Shown here piece by piece: positions 496 to 27,477 of a DNA stretch of 64,000 nucleotides. How positions within the stretch are numbered: the stretch's first letter is position 1; each line of letters begins with the position of its first letter. This stretch comes from Octopus sinensis. Taxonomy: Eukaryota. Location: positions 18,538,001-18,602,000 of the forward strand of contig NC_043023.1 of NCBI RefSeq assembly GCF_006345805.1. The letters run 5' to 3'. The notes below the pieces were generated by a model that had not been told where the DNA came from, ran no database searches, and saw only the letters and a list, made by a program, of their open reading frames with translations. A program made the position numbers and the translations under genes.

Positions 496-1593
496 TGTTT
501 GTTTGTATGCATGCACAAAATGCTTCTCTTGATGTATCATATTCACATATATGCAACAGGCACTCGTAGTCCATCACGCAAGTTCACAAACAAATACGTG
601 CTGCAACTGGGTGTGTGTGAAATTATACGAAATGACAAGTTGAAAGAGCGGGAAAGAGAAGATGCGATGAATATATCAAGAAGACTGGTCTAACTTACAA
701 ATATCTTAAATTGGGAAGATTTTGGAAGGTTCCTGGTTTGATTTCGTTTATATGATTGGAATACGTTGTCCTGTAACATAAATTTCAGTTGATTAGAAAT
801 TGTGTAGAACAATATCGGTGATAAAATGTCACGCATTGTGGATAAAGAACTGGATGATGGAGAAAGGGTAACTAGATTATAATGACGTTGAAGATCATGA
901 TGATGGGTATGATGGTGGCGATGTTAGTGGTAAATATTATATGAAGGAGGAGGAGGGGGAGGGGGAAGAGGGGAGGAGAAGGAAGAATGTGGTGATGGTG
1001 TTGATGACGATGATGTTATGATGCTAATGATGGGATTAATTAACTTGGTTGTAATTATTTGTGAGGGTGTTGTCGATTATGGTTCAGGATACTGATGATG
1101 ATGATGTTGATGGTGATGGTGTTATGATGATGAAGCAAACGATGATGAACTATACGATATTGATGATTAAAATACAGATGGCAAAGACCCTGGGGTCATT
1201 CATGATGACAAGAACGGGGACGATTAGGGTTAGGGTGAGGGTTAGGTCATGGCGTCGATGGTGGTGACATAAATAGTGCAAGTATTAGTTGAGAAGAAAA
1301 GAATAAAAATAGTTGAAAGAGTAAGAAGGAGAAAAAGGAAAAGAAGTTGAAGAAGAATGAAGAGAAAAGAAAGAACAGAAGAAGAAGAAGAAGAAGAAGA
1401 GAAGACGAAGAAGGAGAACACATGTTAATACCGTTACATACAAGAATCTATGCACAATATGAGTGTGTGTGTGTGTGTGTGTGTGTGTGTCGAAATAGAC
1501 ACACTCTTACATAGATCTCTATATATGTATACACATGTATACATTTCCGTGTGTGGGCTCGCATGGGGGGGGGGCAGAAGTATGTAGAATTGG
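1..1593. repeat. Segmental duplicate of 15304-17203 (carries LRR exon E6/E2)
   Basis: Colinear; the intron next to the exon is ~97% identical (4 differences in 130 nt at 771-900 vs 16020-16148). The 15.3-kb copy has a larger (GAA)n tract. Confidence 0.9.
699..770 (-). CDS. LRR exon E6 (72 bp, phase 2/2), paralogue of E2
   Basis: tatgttacag|...|gtaagt; (L)TTYSNHINEIKPGTFQNLPNLRY(L). One consensus Leu is replaced by Thr. Confidence 0.82.
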
Positions 1594-1595
1594 GG

Positions 1596-3190
1596 TGCTC
1601 AATTGTAAATGAGATTAAGATAAAGAAACATTGATTAAAGAACAAACATCAAATGTGAGTCAACCATTTTATATATAACACCATACCTCAATCATTTAGT
1701 CATATGTAAATATTACCATGGTCCTTAAACATATAAAATATACATTTACATAAAAACAGAGAAGGTAAAAATATATATGCGAATAAAATAAAAAATATAT
1801 AGAACAGCCTATCAAAAAGGTAAATATAAAAGACTAAAAATTCCTAAGAATTATAAAGCGTGTCATGCTACAAAAACAACTAATAAACTAAGATAAAACA
1901 AAATATCAAACGACTAAAAATATTTTTAAATGTTCTTTTTTACTCCCTTCACAAAACGTACGTCCAAAAAGTTCAATTCTTAAAACCATGGTTTGTTACA
2001 GTCCATGAGCAAAGAGATTTCCACAAGGTCAATTCAAACAAACCTATGGCCATTTCGATTTTATTAAAGTGCATAACGGCAATGTCCCCCTCTTCAGGAT
2101 GAACAGGAACCAGGAAACACGCACAGAGCAAAACTAAAAAGTTCATACAACGCCACATGGCTAATTTTAAGATAAACCCGTCATTGCAACAAAATTTTCT
2201 AACACATAAAGAAACACCGAATTATTTTATTGCTAAACATGCAGGTGGCTGTTGTTAAGAGAAATTTATACTCGCTGGTTTCAAAACCCTATAAAATTTA
2301 CCCTTATTTACTACATCTACTTTCATTTCTAAACTCTTTCGGAAAAGTAGACGAAAACTTATGGGTGTAAAAAGGGATCACCTCAATAAATTTATTTAAG
2401 CCCAAAAGACTTAAGGATGGCAAGGGATTCCCTTACACATAACTTTCACTTATTGAAATTAACTCTGAAATAAGGAGCCCTCGAAATAACAGACCATTCA
2501 AGAGAATATCTTTTAGTTATTCCTCTTTAAACTGTGTATATAAGAATCAAGTGTAGTAGAATAACAGTATTCTTCGTTGGAAAACGAATTCATGTGAGCC
2601 CTATACATAGTCTTAAGATTTACAGCACTGCCTATATAAAACTTATCCAAATTAACATCCTCTTTAACAAAGCATTTATATATTGTTTAATAGAGAGGCA
2701 AAGCCAATCAAGGAGACATAATACAGTGTTTCTACAATTATACGATTTACCAAAGCCATTCCTAACTTTATTACTACAACTGACATTATTTGTCTGGCTT
2801 CCCACCTTCTTTCCTTCAGATATCCCATTACTGGGATTCGATAAGACCGGTGGGAGCAAATGGTTTGTAGCACTAAACTTAGGCATATAAGAGAATACCT
2901 GGCCAGAACCAGGGTTTTCCAGCAGAAGAATACTTCCTCAGCCCTTTCCCAATTAACTTGCTTCTATTAAGAGACGCAATAATGGAGGTCATACTTGGCG
3001 TTACTGAGTAAGAGAATTTGATGGAAGACTTATTGCAAATGCTGCAGTATTTATGATTGTTTGGGAAATTCTTCTTCAGAATCTTAAACAACAATTTGGT
3101 CAAGGTTCTTTCTCTAAGAGAAAAAGGCAGGGGCGAACCATATTGTATCCTGTATGCTAGAACGTGAGTTCTTGCTTTTATTGTCTCCTC
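1596..3190 (-). mobile_element. Penelope-like element 3' portion (RT C-terminus + GIY-YIG endonuclease + pLTR), copy 1, decayed
   Basis: Minus-strand frames give IWFAPAF..TKLLFKILKKNFPNNHKYCSICNKSSIKFSYS (RT thumb), YNCRNTVLCLLDWLCL, and IYKCFV...FYIGSAVNLKTMYRAHMNSF (GIY-YIG), with stops and frameshifts. Confidence 0.85.
2040..2101 (-). ncRNA. Hammerhead-like motif in Penelope pLTR (also 6153-6214 and 9053-9114)
   Basis: CATC-CTGAAGA-G(G/A)...TC-GAAA-TGGCCA-TA^GGT: intact core and palindromic stem III ATGGCCAT, but weak stems I and II. Confidence 0.5.
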
Positions 3191-3546
3191 TCTTCTAGTA
3201 TTTCGCTTCCTCTATCTATTCCTAACATCTTTACATATGTCACACCCTACAATCTCGATGGACTGGATCCACCCACTACCAGAACACATGATAACGACCC
3301 ATATATATATATATACATGCGTGCATAAAATGGTTCGTCTGATGTGTCACACTCACATATATAAAAACAGATACTCTTATTCCCTCAGAGATGACATTCA
3401 AAAGCAATCATACGTTCTTATTAGGGGAGAGAGAGAATATTGGGAGTGAACAAATGAGAGAGTAGGAAAGTAAGGATATGAAGATATTAAATATTTAGAA
3501 AGATATTGTCAATGAAATGCTAGCAACAAGTCTGATCTTTACTTAC

Positions 3547-3618
3547 AATGTTCTTAAACTGGGGAGATTTTGGAAGGATCCGGCTTTGAGTTCTTTTATA
3601 TCATTGTTATTCAAATAT
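3547..3618 (-). CDS. LRR exon E5 (72 bp, phase 2/2), paralogue of E3
   Basis: cttacag|...|gtaagt; (L)YLNNNDIKELKAGSFQNLPSLRT(L). Confidence 0.88.
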
Positions 3619-4188
3619 CTGTAAGATTAAATTAATTTGAAAAGAAATATCATGGATTAGGTATCTGATAAAATGACACATATTATGACAAAATAATAAG
3701 ATGAGGGACAAAGAAAGTAGGTAATGATGAGGATGAATTTCATGATGATGGAGATAATGGAGTCGGTAGTAGTGATAAATATGAGGCGGAGGAATGTACT
3801 GGTAGTGGTGATGAAGATACTGTCATGCGGTTGAAGGTGGGAATAATAATATTGGTGATGATGAAGACAATAATAAGGTAGACAATGTTGATGCTTCAGT
3901 ACAGAAGATGATGACGAAGATCTTGATGACGGTGGTGGCGACTAAAACGCGACAGCATAATGATGATGGATGGTGAGCATGGAGGTGATGATTTAGTAGA
4001 AGTATTAGATGAATAGGAAAACTTGTGACATACAAGAATAAATTGTATTTCCTCTCACACCGTCTCCGATGAAGGGATATTATTACTTAATATCCCAGAA
4101 ACAGCTGTAAGACCTTCTATCTATAAATGCTCTAATATCTATAGAGCCTTGGTTTTTATCTCATTACGAAAAAAATTCTTATATAAGT

Positions 4189-4660
4189 ACGGGAAGGATG
4201 ACTTTGCAATACTGACAGACACAGAAAGTCTGTCTATGAGCGGAGGAGTGTGTCCTGGGGCTAAAACTACGTACCATCCACCCTTAGGGTTAGCCATATT
4301 GAAATGGCAAAAATACGTCACGTTGTGTTACCGCACTGTATATAACTCACATTGATATTTATCATTGTTTGATTTCACTTTTCAATATCAGCGACAGTGG
4401 ACCTGGAAAAGTATAAGTATTTGTGAAGGAAATCGAATTCTCGGCGAAACTATGATGTCACACGCTGACGAGAGGTCAATACCTCGAACTCGAGTCCGGT
4501 GTATATAAGTTAAGACGGGAAGGATCTTCCCTTTGCAAATACTGACAGGACACAGAAAGTGTGTCTATGGCCATGGAGAGTGTGTCCTCCTGGGCTAAAA
4601 ACTACAGTAGCATCCACCCTTAGGGTTAGCCATATTGAAATGGCAAAAATACGTCACGTT

Positions 4661-4662
<2 letters not shown>
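4189..4662 (+). mobile_element. Retrozyme-like / pLTR partial-tandem insertion (~322-bp monomer, ~1.5 copies)
   Basis: Absent from the paralogous site at ~8295-8305. Internal direct repeat 4189-4324 vs 4514-4660 with the hammerhead between the copies. Confidence 0.65.
4460..4502 (+). ncRNA. Minimal type I hammerhead ribozyme motif, slightly degenerate
   Basis: ACACG-CTGACGA-GAGGT(CAAT)ACCTC-GAA-CTCGA-GTC^CGGTGT: perfect 5-bp stem II, palindromic stem III (A)CTCGAGT, GUC triplet. One A of GAAA and one stem I base are missing. Confidence 0.7.
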
Positions 4663-4734
<72 letters not shown>

Positions 4735-4983
4735 GTGTGTGTATGTTTGTAGACAACAAATATGTGTATTAGTATAACGCTCGGGAAGTGAAAAATCTTT
4801 AACTTTTCGAGCCAACGCCTCCACAGGAAAGATCACAGAAAGAAACAAGGATAGATAAAAAGGAGTGAAAATAAAGAAAATAGAAAGAAAAAATAAAGTG
4901 AAAAAATGAAAAGAGAATATATATATATATATATATATATACAAATATATATATACATATATATATAAATATACATATATATA

Positions 4984-5053
<70 letters not shown>

Positions 5054-5345
5054 TTATACATATCTATACATATATATACACACATATATACATGTATATA
5101 AGTGTGGGTGAGCAAAGTGATTACCCACATGCATCACACACCCGTATATACCAAATGTATACCAACACACTCTCATATTCCCTCTCAGACACATTCAAAG
5201 CTATTCACAAACAATCTCTTACTGCGGGAGAGTGAAAATATAGGGAGAGATTAGTTGAGAGAGCAATACAAGGATGATGTGAAAAATTAAATACTTCGGA
5301 ATATATCATCAATGAAATGTTATCACTGAGAGTGTTCAAACTTAC

Positions 5346-5417
5346 AAATCTACTAAGTTGGGAAGTTTCTGGAAGGCTTCTACATGGATTTCACTAATAT
5401 TATTTTCATGTAAATAC
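5346..5417 (-). CDS. LRR exon E4 (72 bp, phase 2/2)
   Basis: tattacag|...|gtaagt; (L)YLHENNISEIHVEAFQKLPNLVD(L). Confidence 0.88.
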
Positions 5418-5705
5418 CTGTAATATAAAATTCAGCTGAGGAAAAATTGTATGCAATACATGTGGTTAAAATTCATTAGGTGATGGTAAAAATGGATGCA
5501 GATTAAAACGATGATGATAGCGGCGTTATTAGTGATTAATGAGAGGAAGAGGGGGAGAAGGAATATGGAGAACGAGTTAGCGATGATGACGTTGGTATTA
5601 TTATAGGCATCGTGGTGGGAGAGTGAAGCCGATTCTTCTTATAATGATGTTCATATTTGTCTTTTTTTATGGAAATTTAAGGATTTATAGGACTGCAAAA
5701 AGAAG

Positions 5706-7300
5706 TGCTCAATTGTAAATGAGATTAAATTAAAGAAACATTGATCATAGAACAAACATCAAATGTGAGTCAACGATTTTATATATAACACCATACCTCG
5801 ATCATTTAGTCATATGTAAATATTACCATGGTCCTTAAACATATAAAATATACATTTACATAAAAAAAGAGAAGGCAAAAATATATATGCGAATAAAATA
5901 AAATATATTTATAGAACAGCCTATCAAAAAGGTAAATATAAAAAACTAAAAATTCCTAAGAATTATAAAGCGTGTCATGCTACCAAAAAAAACTAATAAA
6001 CTAAGATAAAACAAAATATCAAATAACTAAAAATATTTTTTAAAGTTCTATTTTACTCCCTTCATAAAACGTACGTCCAAAAAGTTCAATTCTTAAAACC
6101 ATGGTAGGTTACAGTCCATGAGCAAAGAGATTTCCACAAGGTCAATTCAAACAAACCTATGGCCATTTCGATTATATTAAAGTGTATAACGGCAATGTCC
6201 CCCTCTTCAGGATGAACAGGAACCAGGAAACACGCACAGAGCAAAACTAAAACGTTCATTCATCGCCACATGGCTAATTGTAAGATAAACCCGTCATTAC
6301 AGCAACATTTTCTAACACATAAAGAAACACCGAATTATTTTAATTGCTAAACATGCAGGTGGCTGTTGTTAATAGAAATTTATACTCGCTGGTTTCAAAA
6401 CCCTATAAAATTAACTCTTACTTACTACATCTACTTTTATTTCTAAACTCTTTCGGAAAAGTAGACGAAAACTTATGGGTGTAAAAAGGGATCACCTCAG
6501 TAAATTTATTTAAGCCCAAAAGACTTAAGGATGGCAAGGGATTCCCTTACACATAACTTTCACTTATTTATATTAACTCTGAAATAAGGAGCCCTCGAAA
6601 TAACAGACCATTCAAGAGAATATCTTTTAGTTATTCCTCTTTAAACCGTGTATATAAGAATCAAGTGTAGTAGAATAACAGTATTTTTCGTTGGGAAACG
6701 AATTCATGTGAGCCCTATACATAGTCTTAAAATTTACAGCACTGCCTATATTAAACTTATCCAAATTACCATCCTCTTTAACAAAGCATTTATATATTGC
6801 ATTAGTAGAGAGGCAAAGCCAATCAAGGAGACATAATACAGTGTTTCTACAATTATACGATTTACCAAAGCCATTCCTAACTTTATTACTACAACTAACA
6901 TTATTTGTCTGGCTTCCCACGTTCTTTCCTTCAGATATCCCATTACTGGGGTTCGATAAGACCGGTGGGAGCAAATGGTTTGTAGCACTAAACTTAGGCA
7001 TATAAGAGCCTACCTGGCCAGTACCAGGGTTTTCCAGCAGAAGAATACTTCCTCAGCCCTTGCCCAATAAACTTGCTTCTATTAAGAGACGAAATAATAG
7101 AGGCCATAGTTGGCGTTACTGAGTAAGAGAATTTGATGGAAGACTTATTGCAAATGCTGCAGTATTTATGATTGTTTGGGAAATTCTTCTTCAGAATCTT
7201 AAACAACAATTTGGTCAAGTTTCTTTCTCTAAGAGAAAAAGGCAGGGGCGAACCATATTGTATCCCGTATGCTAGAACGTGAGTTCTTGCTTTATTGTCT
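5706..7300 (-). mobile_element. Penelope-like element 3' portion, copy 2
   Basis: Near-identical to 1596-3190; ORF 6627-7001 contains AIYKCFVKEDGNLDKFNIGSAVNFKTMYRAHMNSF. Confidence 0.85.
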
Positions 7301-7659
7301 CCTCTCTTCTAGTATTTCGCTTCCTCTATCTATTCCTAACATCTTTACATATGTCACACCTACAATCTCGATGGACTGGATCCACCCTCTACCAGAACAC
7401 ATGATAACGACCCATATATATATATATACATGCGTGCATAAAATGGTTCGTCTGATGTGTCACACTCACATATATAAAAACAGATACTCTTATTCCCTCA
7501 GAGATGACATTCAAAAGCAATCATACGTTCTTATTAGGGGAGAGAGAGAATATTGGGAGTGAACAAATGAGAGAGTGGGAAAGTAAGGATGTGAAGATAT
7601 TAAATATTAAGAAAGATATTGTCAATGAAATGCTAGAAACAAGTCTGATCTTTACTTAC

Positions 7660-7731
7660 AATCCTCCTAAACTGGGGAGATTTTGAAAGGATCCGGCTTT
7701 GAGTTCTTTTATATCATTGTTATTCAAATAT
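7660..7731 (-). CDS. LRR exon E3 (72 bp, phase 2/2)
   Basis: ctaacag|...|gtaagt; (L)YLNNNDIKELKAGSFQNLPSLGG(L). Confidence 0.88.
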
Positions 7732-8318
7732 CTGTTAGATTAAATTTATTTGAAAAGAAATATCATGGATTAGGTATCTGATAAAATGACACATATTATG
7801 ACAAAATAATAAGATGAGGGACAAAGAAAGTAGGTAATGATGAGAATGAATTTCATGATGATGGAGATAATGGAGTCGTTAGTAGTGATAAATATGAGTT
7901 GGGGGAACGTACTGGTAGTGGTGATGAAGATACTGTCATGCGGTCGAAGGTGGGAATAATAATATTGGTGATGATGAAGACAATAATAAGGTAGACAATG
8001 TTGATGCTTGAGAACAGAAGATGATGACGAAGATCTTGATGACGGTGGTGGCGAAAAGAAAGCGACAGGATAATGATGATGGATGGTGAGCATGGTGGTG
8101 ATGATTTAGTAGAAGTATTAGATGAATAGGAAAACTTGTGACATACAAGAATAAATTGTATTTCCTCTCACACCGTCTCCGATGAAGGGATATTATTACT
8201 TAATATCCCAGAAACAGGTGTAAGACCTTCTATCTATAAATGGTCTAATATCTATACAGACTTTGTTTTTATCTCATTACGAAAAAAATTCTTATATATA
8301 AGTATATGTATATATATA

Positions 8319-8356
<38 letters not shown>

Positions 8357-8611
8357 TATATATATTATATATATATATATATTATATATATATATATTAT
8401 ATATATATATTTGTGTGTGTGTGTGTGTGTATGTATGTTTGTAGACAACAAACAGGTGTATTGCTATCACGCTCGGGAAGTGAAAAATCTTTAACGTTTC
8501 GAGCCAACGCTCCTCCACAGGAAGGAACACAGAAAGAAACAAGGAAAGATAAGAAGGAGTGAAAATAAAGAAAATAAATAGAGAAAATAGAGTGAAAAAA
8601 TAAAAAAAAGG

Positions 8612-9278
8612 GCTCAATTGTAAATGAGATTAAGATAAAGAAACGTTGATCATAGAACAAACATCAAATGTGAGTCAACGATTTTATATATAACACCATA
8701 CCTCAATCATTTAGTCATATGTAAATATTACCATTGTCCTTAAACATATAAAATATACATTTACATGAAAACAGAGAAGGTAAAAATATATATGCGAATA
8801 AAAAAATTATATATATAGAACAGCCGATCAAAAAAGTAAATATAAAAACAAAATTCCTAAGAATTATAAAGCGTGTCATGCTACCAATAAAACTAATAAA
8901 CTAAGATAAAACAACATATCAAACGACTAAAAATATTTTTAAATGTTCTTTTTTACTCCCTTCACAAAACGTACGTCCAAAAAGTTCAATTCTTAAAACC
9001 ATGGTTTGTTACAGTCCATGAGCAAAGAGATTTCCACAAGGTCAATTCAAACAAACCTATGGCCATTTCGATTATATTAAAGTGCATAACGGCAATGTCC
9101 CTCTCTTCAGGATGAACAGGAACCAGGAAACATGCACAGAGCAAAACTAAAAAGTTCATACAACGCCACATGGCTAATTTTAAGATAAACCCGTCATTGC
9201 AGCAAAATTTTCTAACACATAAAGAAACACCGAATTATTTTATTGCTAAACATGCAGGTGGCTGTTGTTAATAGAAAT
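8612..9278 (-). mobile_element. Penelope-like pLTR only, copy 3
   Basis: Direct repeat of 5706-6379 and 1596-~2266; shares the same left terminus (gctcaattgtaaatgag) and is truncated at 9278. Confidence 0.75.
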
Positions 9279-9304
9279 AATTACATCACTTTGTTAATGT
9301 GATT

Positions 9305-9957
9305 AAATGTGTTACTGATCAAACCAACGAAATAGTCTGCTTCTTACTGTCAAATTTAAAAACTATATTTGTTCGTAGTTGTTTTTTAGGTTTCTAAACA
9401 AACTTCTATGTGCTTTCGATCCAAATGGTTTTGCTAAACGGTGTCAAGTTTTACTATTCTGTAATTTAAAATAATGGTATTTATTAAGTTTAAAGCTGAT
9501 AGCGATCGCCGTGCAACGACTAAGGACAATAGTCTAATAATTGGGTAAATTAAACCTCGACAGAAAAAAGTAAGCTTTCCCATCCTCGTGGGACTCGAAC
9601 TCACATCCTTTTGTTAACGCGTCGAAGTGTAACCGTCTATACCAGCGAAATGGCCTGCTTCTTTATTATTATTTAAAGAAAAGTAAAACTCAACACCGTC
9701 TAATAAACTCATTTGCACCGAAAGCGCATAGAAGTTTGTTTAAAAAAAAACACTATGAGCTAATATAGTTCTTAAATTTGACAGTAAGAAGCAGCCTAGC
9801 TCGCTGGTATAATCGGTAACACACGTAGGGATTGAGGGATGTGGTTTCGGGTCCCACGCGGATGGGAAAACCTACTTCTTTTTCTGTCGAGAGTTTATAT
9901 ACTCCATTATTACACTATTTTCCTTAATCATTGCACGTTGGTCGCTTTAAGCTTATA
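9305..9957. repeat. Inverted/tandem cluster of tRNA-like (pol III A/B box) units
   Basis: 9490-9665 is an inverted copy of 9790-9955; 9335-9480 is an inverted copy of 9668-9795. Heads show TGGTATAGACGG (A-box-like) and a T-arm GTGAG-TTCGAGT-CCCAC. The cloverleaf is imperfect. Confidence 0.55.
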
Positions 9958-10027
9958 AATTACTATATATATATATACATACATATATATATATATATCA
10001 AAAATAAGCAACAAGAATGATTCCAGT

Positions 10028-10119
10028 AATTTGGTACAATTGTTTCATACTACAACATTTTATTAAAAGCTGTAAATATTACAGCAGATTTAAGATGCTG
10101 AGTACTCTTCAGCCAATTT
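10028..10119 (-). ncRNA. Type I hammerhead ribozyme, apparently intact (Penelope pLTR type)
   Basis: Minus strand: AAATTGG-CTGAAGA-GTACTCAGCAT...ATGTTGTAGTAT-GAAA-CAATTG-TA^CCAAATT. Full core, stem I AATTGG/CCAAATT, extended stem II, palindromic stem III ACAATTGT, GUA cleavage triplet (cut between 10035 and 10034). Confidence 0.8.
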
Positions 10120-10270
10120 ATATAGGTTTTCCAATAATATAACAGCTTTCAAATCAAGTCGTAACATTTTAGGGAAGGTAAATATACAGATAAAGATGTG
10201 AATATGAATCTTAATAACATATGAGGGTATGTAGTTCAGATGCTAACTGACCAAAGCTCTGCTTGCAACT

Positions 10271-11128
10271 GACTGCTATAAGAAATTTTTAGTTTTAGGA
10301 ATGAGGGTAAGGGAAGGTTTTAGAATACCATAAAAGGAATTCAAGTTGGCTGTACTTCTAACAGTAGCTTTCTTTATCTCGGATGTTCGGTGGATTTTAA
10401 AAAACGTTTTAACAACCATTTTTCCTTTTTTAGACTAAAACATAAGGCAGGTTGCACTACACTATCTATCAAAATTTGGGGACTAAAAACAAATAATATA
10501 GGATACAACCTAAAATGGGATATAGTTAGAAGGACAAAACCTTATAGTAGGGTAGGCTGTGAACTTTGTTCTATGGAAACCTATGAAATTTTAAAGTATC
10601 GAAGTAATAAAAATCTGTTGAATAATCGTCTCGAGTTGAGATAATCTTGCATACATTCCACAACTCGAACTTTTAAATACTTTAAATAATTATTTGAGTA
10701 TTCCTATATTTTTCAAACTTTAACTTTTTAATATAATAATAATATGAAATATACTATACTAACCTTTATCTTAACTTTCATAGATGACTAGAAAAACTTC
10801 ACTGTAATCTTGAAATTGGAACTTTCCCTAAATCTAATCTAGTTTTAAAATTTAAAGCTATTCCCCAGTTATAAAATACGATATCTACTAAAAATAAGTG
10901 ATAGTTTTGTTTCCCTTACCCTTTGTAAAAGAATTTAATGATCTCTCGACACTGACCTAGTTTACTTCTCACCACATAGAAAAATTGGCTTTTTGTTTAG
11001 TGACAACCTGAATTCCTTTATGGAATTCTGAATTCCTCCTCTTTCTACAACCAACTTGAATTCCTTTTAAGGTATTCTAAAACATTCCCTTACCCTCATT
11101 CCTAAAACTAAAATTTCTTATAGCAGTC
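10271..11128 (+). mobile_element. Penelope-like fragment (GIY-YIG C-terminal half) with ~83-bp inverted termini
   Basis: ORF 10390-10644 DFKKRFNNHFSFFRLKHKAGCTTLSIKIWGLK..LKWDIVRRTKPY..CELCSMETYEIL..LLNNRLEL; 10271-10354 is the reverse complement of 11046-11128. Confidence 0.8.
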
Positions 11129-11149
11129 TGACGTTGGATTTGCAAGCTT

Positions 11150-14100
11150 TCTAGCATACATTGCATTCAACGGTCAACACAGACATATAGGCAAAATAGT
11201 TGTTGGAGGTTCGTTTTCCATGCGTTCGCAGATGAGATTTGAGGCCAGCAAAAGACAGGCATGATATGTCACAGACTGTGCATACAAAAGGTCATTGTTA
11301 TTCACCTTTTCGATCGTTACATTCTTCCTTAGATCTCGTTTGAGCCTTATTTGCGTTATCCTCACCCCACTCCACACCTTTGTTCGCCATCCAACTCGAT
11401 CCGAAGCAAGGGTTTCTATATCTTCCGGAACCATTCCAAGTGACTTCATAGTAGTCCTTATACAGTCCTTAAACCTCTTTTTAGATTTACGCCAATAGCA
11501 TTCCCCCTCTGCAAACTCGCCATAAAACAGCTGTTTCGGCATGCGTTCATCTGCCGTTCGAACAATACGGCTACACCATCTCGATTGGTTCCTCAAAATC
11601 ATAGCTTTAATCGAGGTGATGCCTGCAGATGCAAGGACTTCTGTGTTTGGAATAAAATACCTCCTTTTAATTTTTAAAATGCGTTGAAGGCATTTTTGGT
11701 GGAATTGTTGTAACAGTTTAAAATGCCTTTCATAACAAGTCCAAGTTTCACAGAAATACAACAGGGATGGTAAGACAAATGATATTAAAGTCACAGCTTT
11801 GTATTCTTATTTATATTTCGCTGGTACCAAACGCGTTACACCAAGCCACCAAATGCTTTTGCTGCCCTTTGAATTCGCTGCTGTATTTCTGTATCAAGAT
11901 TTCCATCATTTTGAAGAGAGCCTCCAAGTTAAATGAACGAATCAACAGCCGCGAGTAACTTTCCCTTGACAAAAATTTTAGTGTGGTTACAAACAGCACC
12001 ACACACAGGGTGATGCATAACAACTGGTTTTTTTTTCAAGTCGATGGTCAAACCAAAATCAACACAAGCAGAGACAAATGCAGATACCAGAGACTGCAGA
12101 CCTGTTTGAGAATTACTGACAAGATCGCAATCTTCAGCGTACAAAAGTTCCCTAATGAATGAAGTAAAAACCTTCGTTTTCAATTTCAGTCTGGTCAGAT
12201 TATAAACATTCCCTGTTGTTCGATATTTTATGTAAATACCCTCCTCAGAGTTTTAAAAAGCGATATATATTGCAACAGCATTATATATTGCAAAGAGGGT
12301 GGGTGCATAAAGGTCATTACAGCAGTTTCCACAACAAAAAGATTTCGAGGGCCTACCACTATAAGTAACTTTAGCTTTTATATCTTGATGCAAAGCTCTG
12401 ACCATATTTACAAATTTTCAGGGCAACATTTTCTCTAAGAATTAGTCACAGAGCCTTTCGATTAACAGTTTCGAATGCGTTGCTCAAATCAACAAAGCAA
12501 TGGTATAGAGTAAAATTCTGTTTAATGCACTTTTCTAGTAATTGTCTGACAGTAAAGATACAATCATCTGTGCTCCTGGAGGAACGAATACCACTCTAAG
12601 ATTCAAACACTATATTTGGAACTATGAAGATATTTAAACGCTCTAACCAGAGACGAAAGCGAAATCCCACGATAATTACCACACAGATCCTTTGGCTCCG
12701 ATTTCTTCGAGGAGACTAAAATGGCATGAATCCAGTCTTGAGGTACTTTCTCAGTTCTCCGACAGTGGCAAATTAATATATTTAAGAGTTCAAACATTTT
12801 GTCCACCTTATATTTCAAGACTTCTGCACAGATTCCATCAGACCCTGGATACTTTTTCACAGTTAAATAAATGTCATTCAGAGTAGGTTCAAATGCCATC
12901 TCTTCTATAACTGGAAGGTGATCAATTTTTTTCTATCGTCCCCAGCTCAACGGCTGAGAGTCTATTCAAAAGTGAAGAAAAATATTCTACCCAAAGATTA
13001 TGAATAAAAGCACTGCCAGTCAGAAGAAAATGTCCATTTGCTGTTCTCACTGGAGCAATTGAAGACGATTTGAGGCCATATACCTCCTTCACATAAGACT
13101 ACAAACCCTTGGCATCATTTCTATCAGCTTTTGTGCCCTTTTTGCTCTATCATTTCATCATTACTGTTTAATTTTCCTTGGAGCAGTCTGCACTTTCCTT
13201 TTCAGTTTTCTGTAAACTTCGTTAGAGATGGCGTTCAAGGACTGAGAAAGAAGTGTATTGTGCCTACGTTTTGCTTTTCTAAAAGTAGATTATGAATTTC
13301 TGCTGATCTATCTGAGTACCAGTCACTGGATTTATGAGATTTAAATCCTATTGACGAACTTGCAGCCTGAAATACTTTTGTTTTGAAATCTTCCAATAGA
13401 TTGTTTGGGTCAAGATTGGTACTTTCTATAGCATCGTGGAATCTTTGCAAGTTGCTTGATAATTTAATGTTTACAACATTTAACTTTTTGGGTACGTTAG
13501 GACAAGACTGTCGATATTTTAGGCATTATCGAAAAATCTATTTTTCCACGCACTAGATAATGGTCAGTTCAGCTTTCTGCTCTACTCATGACCTGAATGA
13601 TAGAAACGTCTTCCATATCACGTTTCCTGATCAGAATATTATCTATGAGATGCCAGTGCTTAGATCTTGGGTACAACCAGGTGGTTTTATGTTTATTTTT
13701 CTGCTTAAACAGACTGTTGGTGACAACCGGATTATTCTCAGTACAAAACGTCAAAAGAGCTACTCCATTTTTATTGCATTTTCCAATCTCACATCGACCT
13801 AAAACAGGCTATGAAACATAGTCCTTTCCACCTCTTACATTGAAATCTCCCAATATGACCGGCTTGTCAGAAATTGGTACTTTCCTCAAAATTGTGCTAG
13901 ATCGTCAAAAATCTGTCCTACAGTTTCATCAGAATGGGACATTGTTGGCGTATAAATACTGACAACGGTAAGAAACCTACCATTTGTCAGTTTAGTATGG
14001 CATGACGTGGTTCGTTCAGATATACCACTTGGAAGCTCTGCAATGGAGGATACTAATGAATTCTTGAGAGCAAATCCAACACCAGATTCTCTACGTTGAC

Positions 14101-14700
14101 CCTTGTGTATGCCTCTCCAAAAGATAGTATATCCATAAGTAGGTTCATTTACTTGACCCTTACCAGAGAGACAAATTTCAAAGAGCGCAACTATATCATG
14201 AAAATATTTCTTGAGCTCACATGCAATAAGTGCAGTACACCTTTCTGGCCTCTTATTGAAATTATCATCGAGACGTGTGCGCACATTGCAGAAACCAAAA
14301 TTCAAAGGATGTCTATTTTGCTTTTCCTTGAAGATTGTTTGACCATAGTGACAGGAGGACGACCGGGTCCCGCCTGTGATACACTGGGACACCTGCCGAG
14401 CTAGACCTGTTCCACTGACGTTCCCAATCCTTTTTTGCCATTTACTGAATCTGTTTGTGACATCTTAGAGTAAGTTACAAGTGAATTTTTAGGTTTCTGC
14501 CAACCAACCAATTCAATGATTTTTGCCATGGAGTACAGGAAGTACCTGTGCAGATAAATAGTTTTCTGTGGGTGTAGCTTGCACTGCAATATTGGCCCAG
14601 AAGACTTTCGCCAGTGTGACATAAAAATTGACAAAACCAGGAACATCCAAGATCTCAGGTTTTATTTCGGAAATTTCCTTCTCCTAGGTAGATTACCAAC
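11150..14700 (-). mobile_element. Decayed near-full-length RTE-clade LINE (APE + RT)
   Basis: Fragments in order: LNFGFCNVRTRLD..RPERCTALIACEL (APE); FCTENNPVVTNSLFKQKNKHKTTWLYPRSKHWHLID; PGSDGICAEVLK..NYRGISL; RELLYAEDCDLV (YADD); LPSLLYFCETWT..RMPKQLFYGE. Many frameshifts. Confidence 0.92.
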
Positions 14701-14916
14701 CAAGATTAAATAGCTTCTATAAGCCCTTGACGTAAGCTATCCCATTCCAGACACCAAAGCAACACTCAGACATTCTATAATGTGATCAAATATCACTCTG
14801 GTGATCGACGTGGAGTAGCACATTCATAAAAAAGGAAGGTACGATATGTGATTTGAAAATGTAAATAAGTATTATATATAAATATAAAAATGTAAAAGAT
14901 ATGCGATAAATATAAA

Positions 14917-15303
14917 TCTCTCTCTATATATAAACGGCAGTTTGTCTGTGTGTGTTTCTGTGTGTCTGTTTGGTTGTACCCTCACCCTGACCACGGCTTT
15001 CAACCGATTCTGATGAAACTTGACACACACATAGCCCAATGTCATAATTCAAAACTAACGCAGCGAAAATTTTGAAAAGTTCCCCCAGTTCTGAAAAAGA
15101 TCGATAAATTCGACATGGGGTCGACAATCAGAAACACAAACCACAGATGGTCTAGGGAACGCAACTCGACCTTTTTAACTATCAAAAAAAATTTACCATC
15201 ATTATTTTTCCAATTTCTTTGCTATTTTTTTGCTATAACTCTCTAAAAATGCTTTATAGTTATTTCCTTTACAAACCCGAGCAACGCCGGGCGATACTGC
15301 TAG
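14917..15303 (+). mobile_element. Non-autonomous Helitron-like element
   Basis: 5' TC(TC)nTATATATAAA after an A; 3' hairpin CCCGAGCAACGCCGGG then CTAG before a T (A|T insertion, no TSD). Confidence 0.75.
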
Positions 15304-15947
15304 TGTATATATAAAAGTATACATATATATACACATATAGAGAAATAAAAAGGTATGATGTGTGAATAAACAATTATAAGATATACAATATATACATAAA
15401 GTAAAAATATACATATATATATAAATATACATATATATATATATAAATATACATATATATAAAATATACATATATATATATACATATAAAAGTTATATGC
15501 ACATTAACAGATATTTTGTTGGATGGCCGTTGACTGTTCAGGAGTTCGTTATACATACATACATACATACATACATACATTTATATACATCATACATGCA
15601 TACATGCATACATACATACAGGCATATAGGCATGCATACATATACATACATAAATATATATACACACATATATATATATATGTATGTACGTAATGTATGT
15701 ATGTATGTACGTATGTATGTATGTATGTATGTATGTATGCATGTTTGTTTGTTTGTATGCATGCACAAAATGCTTCACTTGAGGTATCATATTCACATAT
15801 ATGCAACACGCACTCGTAGTCCATCACGCAAGTTCACAAACAATACGTGCTGCAACTGGGCGTGTGTGAAATTATACGAAATGGCAATTTGAAAGAGCGG
15901 AAATGGAAGATGCGATGAATATATCAAGAAGACTTGGTCTAACTTAC

Positions 15948-16019
15948 AAAGTTGTTAAATTAGGAAGATTTTGGAAGGTTCCTGGTTTGATTTCGTTTAT
16001 ATGATTGAAAGTCAGGTTC
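15948..16019 (-). CDS. LRR exon E2 (72 bp, phase 2/2)
   Basis: tatgttacag|...|gtaagt; encodes (L)NLTFNHINEIKPGTFQNLPNLTT(L), a canonical 24-aa LxLxxNxIxxIxxxxFxxLxxLxxL repeat. Confidence 0.9.
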
Positions 16020-16559
16020 CTGTAACATAATTTCAGTTGATTAGAAATTGTGTAGAACAAGATCAGTGATAAAATGTCACGCATTGTGGATAAAGAACTG
16101 GATGATGGAGAAACGGTAACTAGATTATAATGACGTTGAAGATCATGATGATGGACATGATGGTGGCGTTGTTAGTGGTAAATATTATATGAAGAGGAGG
16201 AGGGGAGGGGGAAGAGGGGAGGAAAAGGAAGAATGTGGTGATGGTGTTGATGACGATGATGTTATGATGCTAATGATGGGATTAATTACCTTGGTTGTAA
16301 TTATTTCTGAGAGTGTTGTCGATTATGGTTCATGATACTGATGATGATGATGGTGATGGTGATAGTGTTATGATGATGAAGCAAACGATGATGTACTATA
16401 CGATATTGATGATTAAAATACAGACGGCAAAGACCCTGGGGTTAGGTTGAGGGTTAGGTCATGGCGTCGATGGTGGTGATATAAATAGTACAAGTATTCG
16501 ATGAGCAGAAAAGAAAAAAAATAGTTGAAAGAGTAAGAAGGAGAAAAAGGAAAAGAAGT

Positions 16560-16873
16560 TGAAGAAGAATGAAGAGAAAAGAAGGAACAGAAGAAGAAGA
16601 AGAAGAAGAAGAAGGAGGAGGAGAAGGAGGAGGAGGAGGAGAAGAAGAAGAAGAAAAAGAAGAAGAAAATAAGAAGAAAAAGAAGAAGAAGAAGAAGAAG
16701 AAGAAGAACGAGGAGGAGGAGGAGGAGAATAAGGAGAAGGAGAAAAGGAGAAGAAGAAGAAGGAGAAGAAGAAGAAGAAGAAAAAGAAGAAGAAGAAGAG
16801 AAGAACAAGAACAAGAAGTAGAAGAAGAAGAAGAAGAGGGAGAATGAATGAATGAATGAATGAATGAATGAAT
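16560..16873 (+). repeat. (GAA/GGA)n purine tract followed by (GAAT)n
   Basis: Direct reading. Confidence 0.95.
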
Positions 16874-17420
16874 CACCCTCTTAGAATAGATTTTTCGTAG
16901 AAAACGATGGAAAAATAGACATTTTAGCAGGAATTTAAAACCTGATGAATGAAGTTTTAATTACAGAAATAGAAGCAAGATTCAAGTATAGTAATCAGTG
17001 TTAATCTAAAGATAAAAACAGTACATGACATACAGACAGAATTACAAACACATGTTAATACTGTTGCATACACGAATCTATACACAATATGTGTGTGTGT
17101 GGAAATAGACACACACTTATATAGATCTCTATATATGTATACACATGTACACATTTCCGTGTGTTGGCTCGCATGGAGGGCGGGCAGAAGTATGTAGAAT
17201 TGGTGTGTGCACAGATGTTTGTGTTCATTATGAATACAATTACTGCAGTGACCTTCTTTGACAAATTGCAGCCCTTCTGTCTCTGGCCATCTTCGACTCC
17301 CTGCAGTTCCATATTTTTTCGAATTTCCGCCTTTTTGGCGAAAAGTCGCGTTAGGATTTTAAAATCTTTAATTAGCACAGAATTTGAGTCAAATAGTTTT
17401 CATCCATATATATATATATA

Positions 17421-17570: not shown

Positions 17571-18118
17571 ATATTATTGGTGAATTGAAGAAATGGAGCT
17601 GAACGAAGATTGAACAGAAATCGTTTTATTTCATTCTACACGTGTTTCGAAAGGCACAATTTACCAAAATCCGATTGAATAATGAGACCATATTGTGTCT
17701 TTATCTTCAGGAAGAAATAGGAAATCCGTTGGAAAAAACAAAAACAGAACAGAGGCGGAGCAAAACAAATCGAACTAGGCTCCTAAGAGCCCATGGCAAA
17801 ACTGTTTATCAGTGTATGTTGAGAACCGGGGGTTGAAGATTTTAACGGGTCAGGCAGCGGTCATTCCTGTGGGTGCACAGGAATGACCGCTGCCATGGGC
17901 TCTTAGGAGCCTAGTTCGATTTGTTTTGCTCCGCTTCTGTTCTGTTTTTGTTTTTTCCAACGGATTTCCTATTTCTTCCTGAAGAGAAAGACACAATATG
18001 GTCTCATTATTCAATCGGATTTTGGTAAATTGTGCCTTTCGAAACACGTGTAGAATGAAATAAAACGATTTCTGTTCAATCTTCGTTTAGCTCCATTTCT
18101 TCAATTCACCAATAATAT
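17571..18118. mobile_element. Foldback/MITE with ~228-bp arms and an internal 19-bp perfect hairpin
   Basis: 17571-17798 is the reverse complement of 17891-18118; GGCAGCGGTCATTCCTGTG-ggtg-CACAGGAATGACCGCTGCC at 17853-17894. Confidence 0.85.
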
Positions 18119-18943: not shown

Positions 18944-19122
18944 AGAGTTTGAGTATTCGGTGGAATGGGTCGAGGGACCGAAGTCAGGTTGCGAGATGAA
19001 CAATCTATAGATGTAAAACTCCGACAAGTGCATTTAATGCAAATGTCCAATGCAGCACGAGATTCCAGAAATAATCTCAAAAAGAGTACCAACACAAAGG
19101 TCGATTTAAGTTGATGAAACAT
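18944..19122 (-). CDS. First coding exon of an extracellular LRR protein: signal peptide + LRRNT cap
   Basis: Translates MFHQLKSTFVLVLFLRLFLESRA-ALDICIKCTCRSFTSIDCSSRNLTSVPRPIPPNTQT(L): hydrophobic leader, then the C-x2-C-x-C...V/IDCSxRNLTSVPxxIP LRRNT pattern. Polypyrimidine acceptor (ttttcttctttaacag) at 19141-19142, 18 nt before the ATG. Phase-2 donor CT|GTAAGT at 18943. Confidence 0.9.
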
Positions 19123-19374
19123 TTTCAGACGTAGATTAATCTGTTAAAGAAGAAAATACAAAATATCAGAAACTTCAGTGTTATTTTTTTTTGTGGCTTC
19201 TTCGAAGGACAAAGATTGCCTCCTCTTCCATGAGATGAATTTAGCTTTGATTTCTCTTATTTTCAGTTTGATATTGAAACATTCAAAACTTAATTCAATG
19301 ATAATTCAATGTGGAGAACATAATTATAAATTATAGCTTTAATGAGTGGTAATGTCGAATAAAAACTGAACATA

Positions 19375-19776
19375 GGCGCAGGAGTGGCTGTGTGGTAAGT
19401 AGCTTGCTTACCAACCACATGGTTCCGGGTTCAGTCCCACTGCGTGGCATCTTGGGCAAGTGTCTTCTGCTATAGCCCAGGGCCGACCAATGCTTTGTGA
19501 GTGGATTTGGTAGACCGAAACTGAAAGAAGCCTGTCGTATATATGTATGTATATATATATGTGTGTGTTTGTGTGTCTGTGTTTGTCCCCCGAGCATTGC
19601 TTGACAACCGATGCTGGTGTGTTTACGTCCCCGTCACTGAGCGGTTCGGCAAAAGAGACCGATAGAATAAGTGCTAGGCTTACAAAGAATAAGTCCTGTG
19701 GTCGATTTGGTCGACTAAAGGCGGTGCTCCAGCATGGCCGCAGTCAAATGACTGAAACAAGTAAAAGAGTAAAGAG
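19375..19776 (+). mobile_element. tRNA-derived SINE family A (other copies 26292-26706 -, 27251-27692 -, 60737-61010 - partial, 20679-20742 + head only)
   Basis: Head GGCGCAGGAGTGGCTGTGTGGTAAG...GGTTCCGGGTTCAGTCCC, internal (TA)/(GT) tract and shared 3' body in all copies. Confidence 0.85.
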
Positions 19777-19861
19777 AGTATCAATCGCCCTTGCACACAC
19801 ATACACAAATAGAAACATACACACAAACACACATAAACACACACACACACACTTATATATA

Positions 19862-20744: not shown

Positions 20745-21898
20745 CAGACGAAATAACTATTTCTTTACTACCCACAAGGGGCTAAACACAGAGAGAACAA
20801 ACAAGGACAGACAAAGGTATTCAGTCGATTACATCGACCCCAGTGCGTAACTGGTACTTATTTAATCGACCCCGAAGGATGAAAGGCAAATTCGACCTCG
20901 TCGGAATTTGAACTCAGAACGTAGTGGCAGACGAATAACTATTTCTTTACTACCCACAAGGGGCTAAACACAGAGAGAACAAACAAGAACAGACAAAGGA
21001 TTAAGTTGACTACATCGACCCCAGTGCGTAACTTGTACTTATTTAATAGACCCCGAAATGATGAAAGGCAAAGTCGACCTCGTCGGAATTTGAACTCAGA
21101 ACGTAGTGACAAACGAAATAACTACTTCTTTACTACCCACAAGGGACTAAACACAGAGAGAACAAACAAGAACAGACAAAGGGATAAAGTTGATTACATC
21201 GACCCCAGTGCGTAACTGGTACTTATTTAATCGACCCCGAAAGGATGAAAAGCAAAGTCGACCTCAGCGGAATTTGAACTCAGAACGTAGTGGCAGACGA
21301 AATAACTATTTCTTTACTACCCACAAGGGGCTAAACACAGAGAGGAAAAACAAGGACTACAAAGGGATAAAGTTGATTACATCGACCCCAGTGCGTAACT
21401 GGTACTTATTTAATCGACCCCGAAAGGATGAAAAGCAAAGTCGACCTCAGCGGAATTTGAACTCAGAACGTAGTGGCAGACGAAATAACTATTTCTTTAC
21501 TACCCACAAGGGGCTAATTATAGAGGAGACAAACAAGGACAGACAAAGGGATTAAGTTTATTACATCGACCCTAGTGCGTAACTGGTACTTATTTAATCG
21601 ACCCCGAAAGGATGAAAGGCAAAGTCGACCTGGGCGGAATTTGAACTCAGAACGTAACGTCAAACGAAATACCTATTTCTTTACTACCCACAAGGGGCTA
21701 AACACAGAGAGAACAAACTAGAACAGACAAAGGGATTAAGTCGATTATATCGACCCCAGTGCGTAACTGGTACTTACTTAATCGACCCCGAAAGGATGAA
21801 AGGCAAAGTCGACCTCGGCGGAATTCGATCTCGGAACGTAACGGCAGACGAAATACCGCAAAGCATTTCGCCCGGCGTGCTAACGTTTCTGCCACCTT
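20745..21898 (-). repeat. Tandem array (~183-bp period, 6 units) built from a tRNA-derived SINE body
   Basis: Marker ttctttactacccacaag at 20761, 20943, 21126, 21310, 21493, 21677. A single SINE head (GGTGGCAGAAACGTTAGCACGCCGGGCG) lies at 21860-21898. Diverged single copies occur at 25165-25370 and 29040-29235. Confidence 0.85.
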
Positions 21899-26976: not shown

Positions 26977-27477
26977 TTAATCCATACAAGAAAGCACAAA
27001 AAAACACAACAACGCGAGGACGTGGACAAATATAGTATATTATTGGACGCTCAGGAAAGAAGGAAAGAAGGGGGTTTAACGTTTCGAGCGGAGCTCTTCG
27101 TCGGAAGCATAGGAGAAGGAAAGATCCAGAGAAGGGAATATATATACATATATATATCATACACACACACTTGTACACACACATAACTATATTTTATATC
27201 ATTATCTCTCTCTCTCACTCTCTCTCTCTCTCTCTCACTCTTTCTGTATATCTCTTTTACTCTTTTACTTGTTTCAGTAATTTGACTGCAGCCATGCTGG
27301 AGCACCGCCTTTAATCGAGCAACTCGACCCGGGACTTATTCTTTTGTAATCCCAGTACTTATTCTATCGGTCTCTTTTGCCGAACCGCTAAGTAACGGGG
27401 ACATAAACCACCAGCATCGGTTGTCAAGCAATGCTAGGGGGACAAACACAGACACAGACACACAAACACACACACGC

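Follow-up and report, generated by a model that had tools for sequence, protein, structure and literature searches.

Beta-strand codons of recently duplicated leucine-rich repeat exons diverge faster than their introns in an Octopus sinensis gene

The gene and its 72-nt repeat exons

The window analysed here, a 64-kb stretch of Octopus sinensis DNA (contig NC_043023.1, positions 18,538,001 to 18,602,000), is AT-rich animal DNA that is rich in microsatellites, short interspersed element (SINE)-like sequences and a 16-bp satellite. Its minus strand carries the 5′ half of a gene for a secreted or surface ectodomain built of leucine-rich repeats (LRRs), and the subject of this report is the small LRR exons of that gene, two pairs of which look like recent duplicates. 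In LRR proteins the xxLxLxx β-strand forms the ligand-binding concave surface, and it is in the codons of this strand that nearly all of the differences between the duplicated exons lie.

The RefSeq product of the gene is XP_036369864.1 (P0051 below), an O. sinensis protein of 461 amino acids named "leucine-rich repeat-containing protein 15-like", which was retrieved by an exhaustive profile-free protein search with the 60-amino acid peptide of the first coding exon in the window (E1) as the query. The 229-kb RefSeq model encodes, in order, a predicted signal peptide and LRRNT, ten LRRs of 24 residues, an LRRCT-like cap and a SEA-like tail; each LRR corresponds to one 72-nt phase-2 exon, and the ten exon types of the full protein are, in order, A B X B A C B C B D. 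Residues 60–178 of P0051 have 100% amino-acid identity to the translation of exons E2 to E6 of the window, and the later exons, E7–E11, were compared at the protein level from P0051. When E1 and E2–E6 of the window are joined they read openly through 179 residues, a translation that matches the Pfam families LRR_8 (E = 8.8e-32) and LRR_4 (E = 1.5e-18); P0051 as a whole matches LRR_8 with E = 5.8e-65. The names IGFALS, LRRC15 and Slit carried by members of this family derive from automatic best-hit annotation, and the matches to IGFALS and LRRC15 in the Protein Data Bank (PDB) are generic repeat matches in many registers.

Five exons on the minus strand are each exactly 72 nt long, are bordered by TTACAG on the 5′ side and GTAAGT on the 3′ side, and share one common phase (2/2). 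These are E2 (A type, NLTFNHINEIKPGTFQNLPNLTT; 15948–16019, with β-strand codons at 16007–16018 and 15950–15955, its amino acids being P0051 residues 60–82), E3 (B type, YLNNNDIKELKAGSFQNLPSLGG; 7660–7731, with its x2x3 codons at 7662–7667), E4 (YLHENNISEIHVEAFQKLPNLVD; 5346–5417, an older paralogue that has no recent twin inside the window), E5 (B type, the twin of E3, with peptide ...SLRT; 3547–3618) and E6 (A type, the twin of E2, with peptide TTYS...RY; 699–770). Because the exons are in phase 2, each LxxLxLxxN β-strand spans an exon junction, with two codons at the end of one exon, a Leu codon split by the intron, and four codons at the start of the following exon. Across genes and species, intron flanks are conserved in the 16 LRR exon units of the window and of two related loci, L001 of O. 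bimaculoides and L002 of O. sinensis, with cTTTTATnTTACAG before the exon and GTAAGTTgga.cag.cttgttgata..atttcattgac after it. No further LRR exon, pseudo-exon or other LRR-coding piece was found in the 64-kb window, and its long open reading frames belong to satellite, microsatellite and transposon sequence only. A match to the peptide TFNHINKV at 9287–9310 was rejected as an LRR exon; it falls inside the terminal repeat of a transposon and is regarded as a chance match.

The first coding exon, E1 (18944–19122, minus strand), contains the ATG, a predicted signal peptide and LRRNT and the start of the first β-strand, and ends in phase 2 at a GTAAGT donor. Its translation shows a hydrophobic N-terminus and the CxxCxC...C pattern of an LRRNT, whose Pfam match of 25.0 bits (E = 1.4e-5) is slightly below the gathering score of 25.8. 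E1 lies 2.9 kb upstream of E2 and is intact, yet the RefSeq model takes a different first exon. The two differ at 10 of 60 aligned positions; residues 1–31 are identical, and the differences lie in the LRRNT loop (TCRSFTSIDC in E1, SCQG-NRINC in RefSeq) and just before the first strand Leu (NTQT and NIEY, respectively). E1 could be an alternative first exon, or the 229-kb annotation could have been mis-joined. First exons homologous to E1, flanks included, are present in the genes of O. sinensis P0015 (locus L002) and O. bimaculoides P0001 (locus L001).

Duplicate blocks and their introns

The pairs E2/E6 and E3/E5 sit in what are, by their alignments, two recent segmental duplicates, all of whose copies are read on the minus strand. 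Block A (15303–17205) consists of E2 and flanking intron and holds an expanded (CTT)n/(CCT)n tract at 16560–16860, and block A′ (1–1590) consists of E6 with about 820 nt upstream and at least 698 nt of downstream intron, its similarity to block A reaching the window edge. Outside microsatellites these two blocks differ by 4.1% substitutions. Block B1 (1595–4185; E5 and introns) and its counterpart B2 (5705–8298; E3 and introns) are 96.3% identical over 2.6 kb. A third, partial B copy (8612–9278) is a 3′ tail that has no exon; it is 96.4% identical to 1597–2265 and 94.3% identical to 5697–6379, and is truncated at 9279 by transposon-rich sequence.

With the microsatellite left out, 43 of 1048 aligned intron nt (4.1%) differ between A and A′; between B1 and B2 the introns differ at 85 of 2517 nt (3.4%). 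The MAFFT global alignment misaligns 1416–1590 with 16629–17205 across the (CTT)n tract, and that part was judged by eye and stands outside the counts. Divergence is even, at 3–5%, over the 1.6 and 2.6 kb of the blocks and ends abruptly at the block junctions. The distal part of A′ is less diverged (1.2%) than its proximal part (4–5%). The 130 nt of intron upstream of E6/E2 contain 3 substitutions and 1 indel, which matches the four differences in 130 nt that the initial annotation of this DNA had counted, and the 130 nt downstream contain 5 substitutions and 3 gap columns.

Differences between the twin exons

E2 and E6 differ at 11 of 72 nt (exon nt 3, 4, 5, 6, 8, 9, 12, 58, 66, 68 and 69). 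In the window these are positions 765–768, 762–763 and 759 in the codons x5, L6, x7 and x8, positions 705 and 702–703 in x2x3, and position 713, a synonymous Pro change; exon nt 13–57 are identical, and the peptide NLTF..TT of E2 is TTYS..RY in E6. Seven differences in the first four codons, three in the last two and one that is synonymous is exactly the distribution that had been described initially, and it holds to the base. E3 and E5 differ at 4 nt, one synonymous (exon nt 46, position 3573) and three in the x2x3 codons (exon nt 65, 68 and 69; positions 3554, 3551 and 3550) that replace GG of E3 by RT in E5, again as described; their first four codons are identical at all 12 nt. The earlier claim that the exons have diverged faster than their introns stands for E2/E6 over the whole exon (11/72 against 4.1%; binomial P = 1.7e-4), while for E3/E5 it fails exon-wide (P = 0.23) and holds for the β-strand codons (P = 0.02).

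The six β-strand codons (x2 and x3 at the end of one exon, and x5, L6, x7 and x8 at the start of the next) were treated as an a priori class of 18 nt per exon, called x-codons here, and the remainder of the exon as framework. Ten of the 18 x-codon nucleotides are changed between E2 and E6 (P = 4e-10), and three of 18 between E3 and E5 (P = 0.02). With both pairs pooled, the differences amount to 13/36 nt (36%) in the six β-strand codons, 2/108 nt (1.9%), both synonymous, in the framework, and 128/3565 nt (3.6%) in the introns, so that the x-codons of the window pairs have changed at about 10 times the intron rate (Fisher P = 3e-10). Put differently, 13 of the 15 exon differences fall inside 25% of the exon nucleotides (P = 9e-7), and the initial statement that the excess is almost confined to concave-face codons is borne out. 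The x-codon dN is 0.69, against an intron distance of 0.037 and a framework dN of 0; the framework has no changes at about 82 non-synonymous sites where 2.9 would be expected at the intron rate (P = 0.05). Within the x-codons, 12 of 24 first and second positions are changed and only 1 of 12 third positions (P = 0.015), and the changes comprise 8 transversions and 3 transitions. Nowhere in the 1.4-kb A/A′ alignment are differences packed more densely into 10 nt than at the 5′ end of the exon.

Two other features of the E2/E6 pair were seen. One is a double change, ACT to TAT (Thr to Tyr), found at two places in the exon (nt 8–10 and 68–70); the other is that E2 has two N-x-T glycosylation sequons, both of which are missing from E6. 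A compensated frameshift or small inversion was considered for exon nt 3–12, and inspection by eye gave no simpler alignment.

Repeats of the same protein and of paralogous genes

Within P0051 itself, four exon pairs have 0/17 framework residue differences and 2–6/6 differences at x positions. A larger set is provided by a paralogous O. sinensis gene, L003 (product XP_036355612.1), whose 72-nt exons, 11 in all, alternate between two families, R (six exons) and S (five exons). In L003 x-codon divergence (0.11–0.61) exceeds intron divergence (0.04–0.21) in 25 of 25 within-family pairs, and intron divergence exceeds framework divergence (0.02–0.13) in 24 of the 25. The dN/dS ratio at xxLxLxx positions in a larger set had been named beforehand as the measurement on which the idea of selection might fail, and in L003 it favoured that idea. 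In family R the x-codons have dN 0.48 and dS 0.09 and the framework has dN 0.03 and dS 0.14, giving an omega (dN/dS) of about 5 at the x-codons and 0.2 in the framework. Family R x-codon divergence at codon positions 1, 2 and 3 is 0.40, 0.44 and 0.06, and a tree-free minimum number of changes per site is 1.17 at x-codon positions 1–2, 0.04–0.28 in the introns and 0.06 at framework positions 1–2.

From one end of an R or S unit to the other, divergence is about 0.04 over the final 100 nt of the upstream intron, rises to 0.37–0.50 in exon nt 1–12, falls to 0.05–0.10 in the core, is 0.10–0.27 in the last 9 exon nt, and returns to 0.00–0.08 in the next 250 to 600 intron nt, by family. Farther away it climbs again, up to 0.2–0.45 beyond about 200–350 nt upstream of R and S units, and up to 0.25–0.3 beyond about 470 nt downstream of R exons. 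This mosaic implies that gene conversion or very strong constraint may be keeping exon and proximal introns uniform while the β-strand codons escape. In the stretch from about -100 to +400 that surrounds each R-type exon (for example L003 10771–11340), the 250 intron nt downstream of the six exons are 0–1.3% diverged, and the sequence 500 nt further on is 25–30% diverged, a pattern that suggests either homogenisation through gene conversion or an intronic element under unusual constraint.

Hypervariable x-codons are common in the family and not universal, since the repeats of P0015 are not all hypervariable. A comparison of 120 older exon pairs from three genes was dropped as a test against a neutral rate; the ±80-nt flanks of these pairs (mean divergence 0.29) are less diverged than their framework (0.38). 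One S-type LRR exon of L003 (9068–9140) is 73 nt long in the assembly, with an A8 run where its paralogues have A5CA. This is likely to be an assembly homopolymer error or a real frameshift, and is the probable origin of the chimeric 'YLSE...' units that several RefSeq isoforms contain.

Predicted structure of the repeats

The AlphaFold model has a mean predicted local distance difference test score (pLDDT) of 77.7, with β-strands at residues 59–64 and 83–88 and from residues 107, 131 and 155. The variable residues fall in the β-strand of each repeat in this model, so that the proposed placement of the variable sites agrees with the predicted structure. The protein has the features of typical extracellular LRR proteins, namely 24-residue LxxLxLxxNxL repeats by profile and, in the model, a solenoid with one strand per repeat. 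A sequence search of the PDB likewise gave typical extracellular LRR proteins, with LGR4/5 among the best matches and structures of variable lymphocyte receptors (VLRs) also among the matches, and Foldseek matched the model to the Nogo receptor, LGR4, LGI1 and chondroadherin.

The E6 repeat is folded in the model with a pLDDT of about 86 despite the replacement of Leu6 by Thr. Both E6 (TTYS, P0051 157–160) and the next exon, E7 (VSHK, 181–184), lack the buried Leu6, and these two positions would stack in the solenoid core. Because E7 has Ser at the same core position, the loss of Leu6 in E6 may be one half of a paired structural feature rather than decay.

Selection on the concave face and its alternatives

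We think that these patterns are probably due to diversifying selection on the concave face after duplication of exon modules, with gene conversion homogenising the rest of the units in the paralogue. The LRR array grew through tandem duplication of exon-plus-intron modules, and the two duplications in the window are young, as their introns are 3.4–4.1% diverged. Since duplication, the framework codons have been held by purifying selection, which the framework deficit shows marginally, and the six β-strand codons would have been pushed apart by positive selection for amino-acid change, partly via multi-nucleotide steps. Positive selection at these codons is suggested because they combine a rate excess with a codon-position bias and because the pattern is replicated in the paralogue. 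Each new repeat would thereby add a different patch to the concave ligand-binding surface rather than repeat an old one. In older arrays gene conversion would keep the exon core and about 100–400 nt of proximal intron near-identical, a uniformity that is seen in L003, and after such conversion the β-strand codons would stand out as islands of divergence. The window duplicates look young, and plain divergence under positive selection is the best fit to them; in L003 homogenisation and diversity-preserving selection are evident; and the two patterns are stages of one process. The function served is likely to be recognition of a ligand or partner by the ectodomain of an octopus-specific receptor family of the adhesion G protein-coupled receptor (GPCR) type, as the sequence relationships below suggest. 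Of the mechanisms put forward in the initial annotation, diversifying selection on the binding face finds support in the codon-position bias and in L003; gene conversion is indeed visible in L003, but acts there as a homogeniser of everything except the x-codons and not as a diversifier.

Several observations weigh against diversifying selection as the explanation. The window holds only two young exon pairs, and for E3/E5 the whole-exon rate does not exceed that of the introns (4/72 against 3.4%, P = 0.23). The changes between E2 and E6 are tightly clustered (seven in 10 nt, with adjacent doublets and ACT to TAT twice) and may represent as few as three independent events, and the x-codon divergence of this pair, 0.56, is already as high as that of old paralogues (0.44–0.83). 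E6 has Thr in place of the buried consensus Leu6, a change that selection on exposed residues alone does not predict. In L003, family S shows the same rate excess, but its x-codon dS is 0.62 and omega is only about 1.3, and in P0015 (L002) some repeats show no x-codon excess (s5–s6: 0.11 against 0.30 in the framework). Shared ancestry makes the pairwise values non-independent, and each partition contains very few sites. Finally, it is known that a signal of positive selection can be imitated by multinucleotide mutations (bioRxiv 10.1101/165969).

The alternative that survives best is concerted evolution, in which the exon differences are old and it is the introns and framework that have been recently homogenised, by gene conversion or unequal crossing-over, with selection rejecting those tracts that overwrite the binding face. 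We regard this as unlikely for the window. In its favour, the level of E2/E6 x-codon divergence just mentioned is that of old paralogues, the distal part of block A′ is less diverged than the proximal part, and in L003 six copies differ by only 0–5% in a core that reaches from about 100 nt before each exon to 400 nt after it, with 25–40% divergence further out and x-codon islands of 37–50%. On the other hand, even 3–5% divergence with abrupt block ends is what plain segmental duplication would give, E3 and E5 show no difference in the 12 nt of their first four codons, and the third positions of x-codons, which an old divergence should have altered, are nearly unchanged (1/12 in the window; 0.056 in family R). 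Concerted evolution would in any case still need selection for diversity at the same codons, so that it alters the tempo of the process and not its meaning.

It is less probable still, and in our judgement quite improbable, that the differences are the product of neutral complex mutation, that is, of a few multinucleotide or templated events (of the polymerase-zeta type, or micro-conversions with another LRR exon as donor) that struck the exon ends by chance or were tolerated there for lack of constraint on those residues, with no positive selection. The differences do come in runs (exon nt 3–6, 8–9 and 68–69), adjacent doublets make up 8–10% of intron events as well, and the buried Leu6 has been lost in E6. 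If differences no more than 3 nt apart are merged into one event, the x-codons have 3 events where 1.06 are expected from the introns, which is not significantly high. However, clusters of at least 3 differences number 3 in 36 x-codon nt and 4 in 3565 intron nt, a density about 74 times greater in the x-codons (P = 1e-5), and the changes avoid third codon positions (P = 0.015). Relaxed constraint cannot surpass the neutral, that is the intron, rate, and the rate observed is ten times higher. Nor is there an evident template: in a search of both strands of the window and of L001, allowing up to 2 mismatches, the E6 patches GACAACGTATTCC and TTAAGATATTT found no donor, with only chance 2-mismatch matches in L001, and the E6 residues are encoded by no LRR exon found in L001–L003. 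The same localisation has also arisen independently in the 11 exons of L003, with an omega of about 5 in family R.

Artefact or decay, meaning errors of assembly or base-calling or a dying pseudo-exon E6, is highly improbable even though a homopolymer error is probable in at least one exon of the family in this assembly (the 73-nt exon of L003) and E6 lacks a consensus Leu, since long-read errors are mostly indels and not codon-aware substitutions, decay runs at the intron rate and not ten times faster, E6 has kept its splice sites, reading frame and 45-nt core intact while its introns changed by 4%, and E6 is included in the RefSeq model and folds well in the AlphaFold model. A dedicated diversification mechanism, by which the binding-face codons would be hypermutated (somatically or by targeting) or overwritten by copied cassettes, as happens in lamprey VLRs or in AID-driven systems, would suit the extreme localisation of hypervariability on an invariant framework and the conservation of intron flanks in all 16 units of three genes. 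It is scarcely credible here, since all units are ordinary exons whose splice sites are canonical, they belong to a single germline gene with a continuous reading frame, the window has no cassette arrays that lack splice sites, and the changes are mostly transversions, unlike the signature of a cytidine deaminase. Both of these had been raised initially, as a targeted mechanism and as local base errors or decay, and neither fares well; because the changes are codon-position specific, they argue for selection on the protein and not for errors, decay or a blind mutational patch.

Comparison with known systems

Diversifying selection on the concave face of LRR proteins is a well-known phenomenon, as in plant disease-resistance (R) genes, VLRs and TLRs. 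In the plant R genes (the Cf-4/Cf-9, Xa21 and RPP families) it acts on the solvent-exposed xxLxLxx residues, and the octopus gene resembles them in having an invariant hydrophobic framework, hypervariable β-strand residues and a Ka/Ks above 1; in both, arrays have expanded by tandem duplication and unequal exchange, and the remaining sequence is evened out by exchange. As in those genes, replacement at x positions lies above the neutral rate and that in the framework below it, both in the window and in L003, with family S the weaker case. The plant LRR blocks, however, mostly lack introns and are compared between paralogous genes or alleles, whereas the octopus unit is a single 72-nt exon with its intron. 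What is new here is an intragenic, exon-by-exon case, in an octopus-specific receptor family, in which the co-duplicated introns serve as an internal control. Because these introns act as an internal neutral clock, this is an unusually clean case of adaptive change, with an excess of at least ten-fold that is codon-position specific and is replicated in a paralogue.

In lampreys and hagfish, VLR diversity arises by somatic copying of non-spliced cassettes into an incomplete germline gene. The octopus gene shares with the VLRs a predicted LRRNT-LRR-LRRCT scaffold, many near-identical 24-residue modules, and diversity on the concave β-sheet of a constant framework. Its modules, unlike those of VLRs, are germline exons with canonical splice sites, and their diversity is evolutionary: all five units have AG and GT borders and read in one open frame, and there is no sign of VLR-like somatic diversification in the one germline assembly, from which somatic change could not show.

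In the primate L/M opsin genes and at MHC loci, conversion homogenises the sequence, selection keeps functional sites apart, and exons differ more than introns. The octopus units are similar, most clearly in L003, in that introns are more alike than exons and divergence forms islands at functional codons; they differ in being exon repeats within a gene and not whole-gene paralogues, and the window blocks resemble young duplicates rather than converted old ones.

One LRR per exon of about 72 bp is also the arrangement of LGR4/5/6, the glycoprotein-hormone receptors and Slit, whose arrays are ancient and stable; to our knowledge they have no recent intragenic duplicates or x-codon hypervariability. 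The octopus exons, like those of LGR4/5/6 and Slit, are 72 nt long with symmetric phase, and can be duplicated or skipped without a frameshift. As in Dscam1, tandem exons of identical length and phase are present (all 72 nt, phase 2/2). RefSeq lists predicted isoforms that differ by whole 24-amino acid units, 13 for the L003 gene (409, 385, 361 or 337 amino acids) and several for the gene of another relative, P0063 (525, 501 or 477 amino acids), and lists none for the window gene; the chimeric 'YLSE...' isoforms were rejected as evidence of splicing, being work-arounds of the 73-nt exon. The predicted isoforms agree with the symmetric phase of the exons and are a hint of cassette use. The idea that the LRR exons form a cassette system, in which module duplication would supply the copies, gene conversion would even out framework and splice-proximal introns and selection would set the binding-face codons apart, and whose alternative inclusion together with alternative first exons such as E1 would give many ectodomains per gene, seems to us doubtful. 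If true, octopuses would have in their peripheral nervous or sensory system an LRR-based counterpart of the diversity of Dscam1 or the clustered protocadherins, and such combinatorial use would bear on the diversity of cephalopod cell-surface recognition.

Relationship to octopus adhesion GPCRs

The exhaustive search with the E1 peptide also gave the O. vulgaris 'adhesion GPCR G6-like' proteins P0056 (63% identity) and P0065 and P0067 (49–51%), and among the named matches the first-exon relatives were from octopuses only. P0056 contains Pfam LRR_8 and 7tm_2 domains, and P0067 has a GPS-like motif by eye. The window gene is thus like the adhesion GPCRs in its N-terminal exon, which is homologous to that of LRR-containing family members, but P0051 does not combine GAIN/GPS and 7tm_2 in one polypeptide; Pfam gave only LRR-type matches in P0051, and none to a GPS or seven-transmembrane (7TM) domain. 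Because it has neither, P0051 is best described as a homologue of adhesion-GPCR ectodomains, which falls short of a proven adhesion GPCR. Possible reasons are truncation of the P0051 model or a gene that is a stand-alone copy of the ectodomain. On the strand opposite P0051, the annotation has a gene for a 1088-residue LRR+GPS+7tm_2 protein that extends over the full 249 kb of the locus, and in O. bimaculoides (L001 21866–27242) a GPS+7tm_2 gene lies 4.6 kb downstream of the small LRR gene P0001. It may be that small gene models of the 'LRR-only' kind are heads that were split from adhesion GPCR genes. The relatives are adhesion GPCR ectodomains, and as such do not establish the immune or chemosensory role that was suggested initially.

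An octopus-specific, tandemly clustered expansion of adhesion GPCRs ('group 3') was described by Ritschard et al. (2019, PMC6408891), and in the passages of that paper drawn on here LRRs are reported in 5 of 22 members, with positive selection at the level of branches and no individual positively selected sites found. The N-terminus of the window gene is closely related to the O. vulgaris G6-like proteins, as would befit that expansion, whereas its 461-amino acid product, unlike those receptors, ends after the SEA-like tail; the same passages of PMC6408891 contain no exon-level x-codon pattern of the kind seen in the window gene. Going by these passages, selection in the octopus GPCR expansions had been seen only along branches, its sites being previously unlocated. 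The window pairs and L003 suggest an octopus-specific family of LRR and adhesion-GPCR-like proteins that is actively evolving new recognition surfaces.

Surrounding sequence

The remainder of the window is dominated by repeats. A satellite of 29.5 kb, with about 1,845 copies of the 16-bp unit CAGGATATCAAGATTC (88% matches), occupies 30515–59985, about 11 kb upstream of E1, and is absent from L001 and L002, the two related loci checked for it. Intron 2 (9279–15303) is full of transposon debris and truncates the third B-block copy; it includes an inverted repeat (9308–9474/9663–9823), a foldback element (about 10290–11110) and a degenerate retrotransposon of the type without long terminal repeats (about 11.2–14.4 kb, minus strand) with a weak endonuclease match (E = 0.009). 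Intron 1 contains a 228-bp inverted repeat (17571–17798 and 17891–18118) whose arms are 98.7% complementary and which is probably a foldback element or similar to a miniature inverted-repeat transposable element. Six copies of a 184-bp tandem repeat lie at 20745–21855, and copies of a SINE-like element of about 400 bp at 19372–19781, 26260–26721, 27237–27728 and 60823–61013 are 79–95% identical to sequences in O. bimaculoides and O. sinensis loci.

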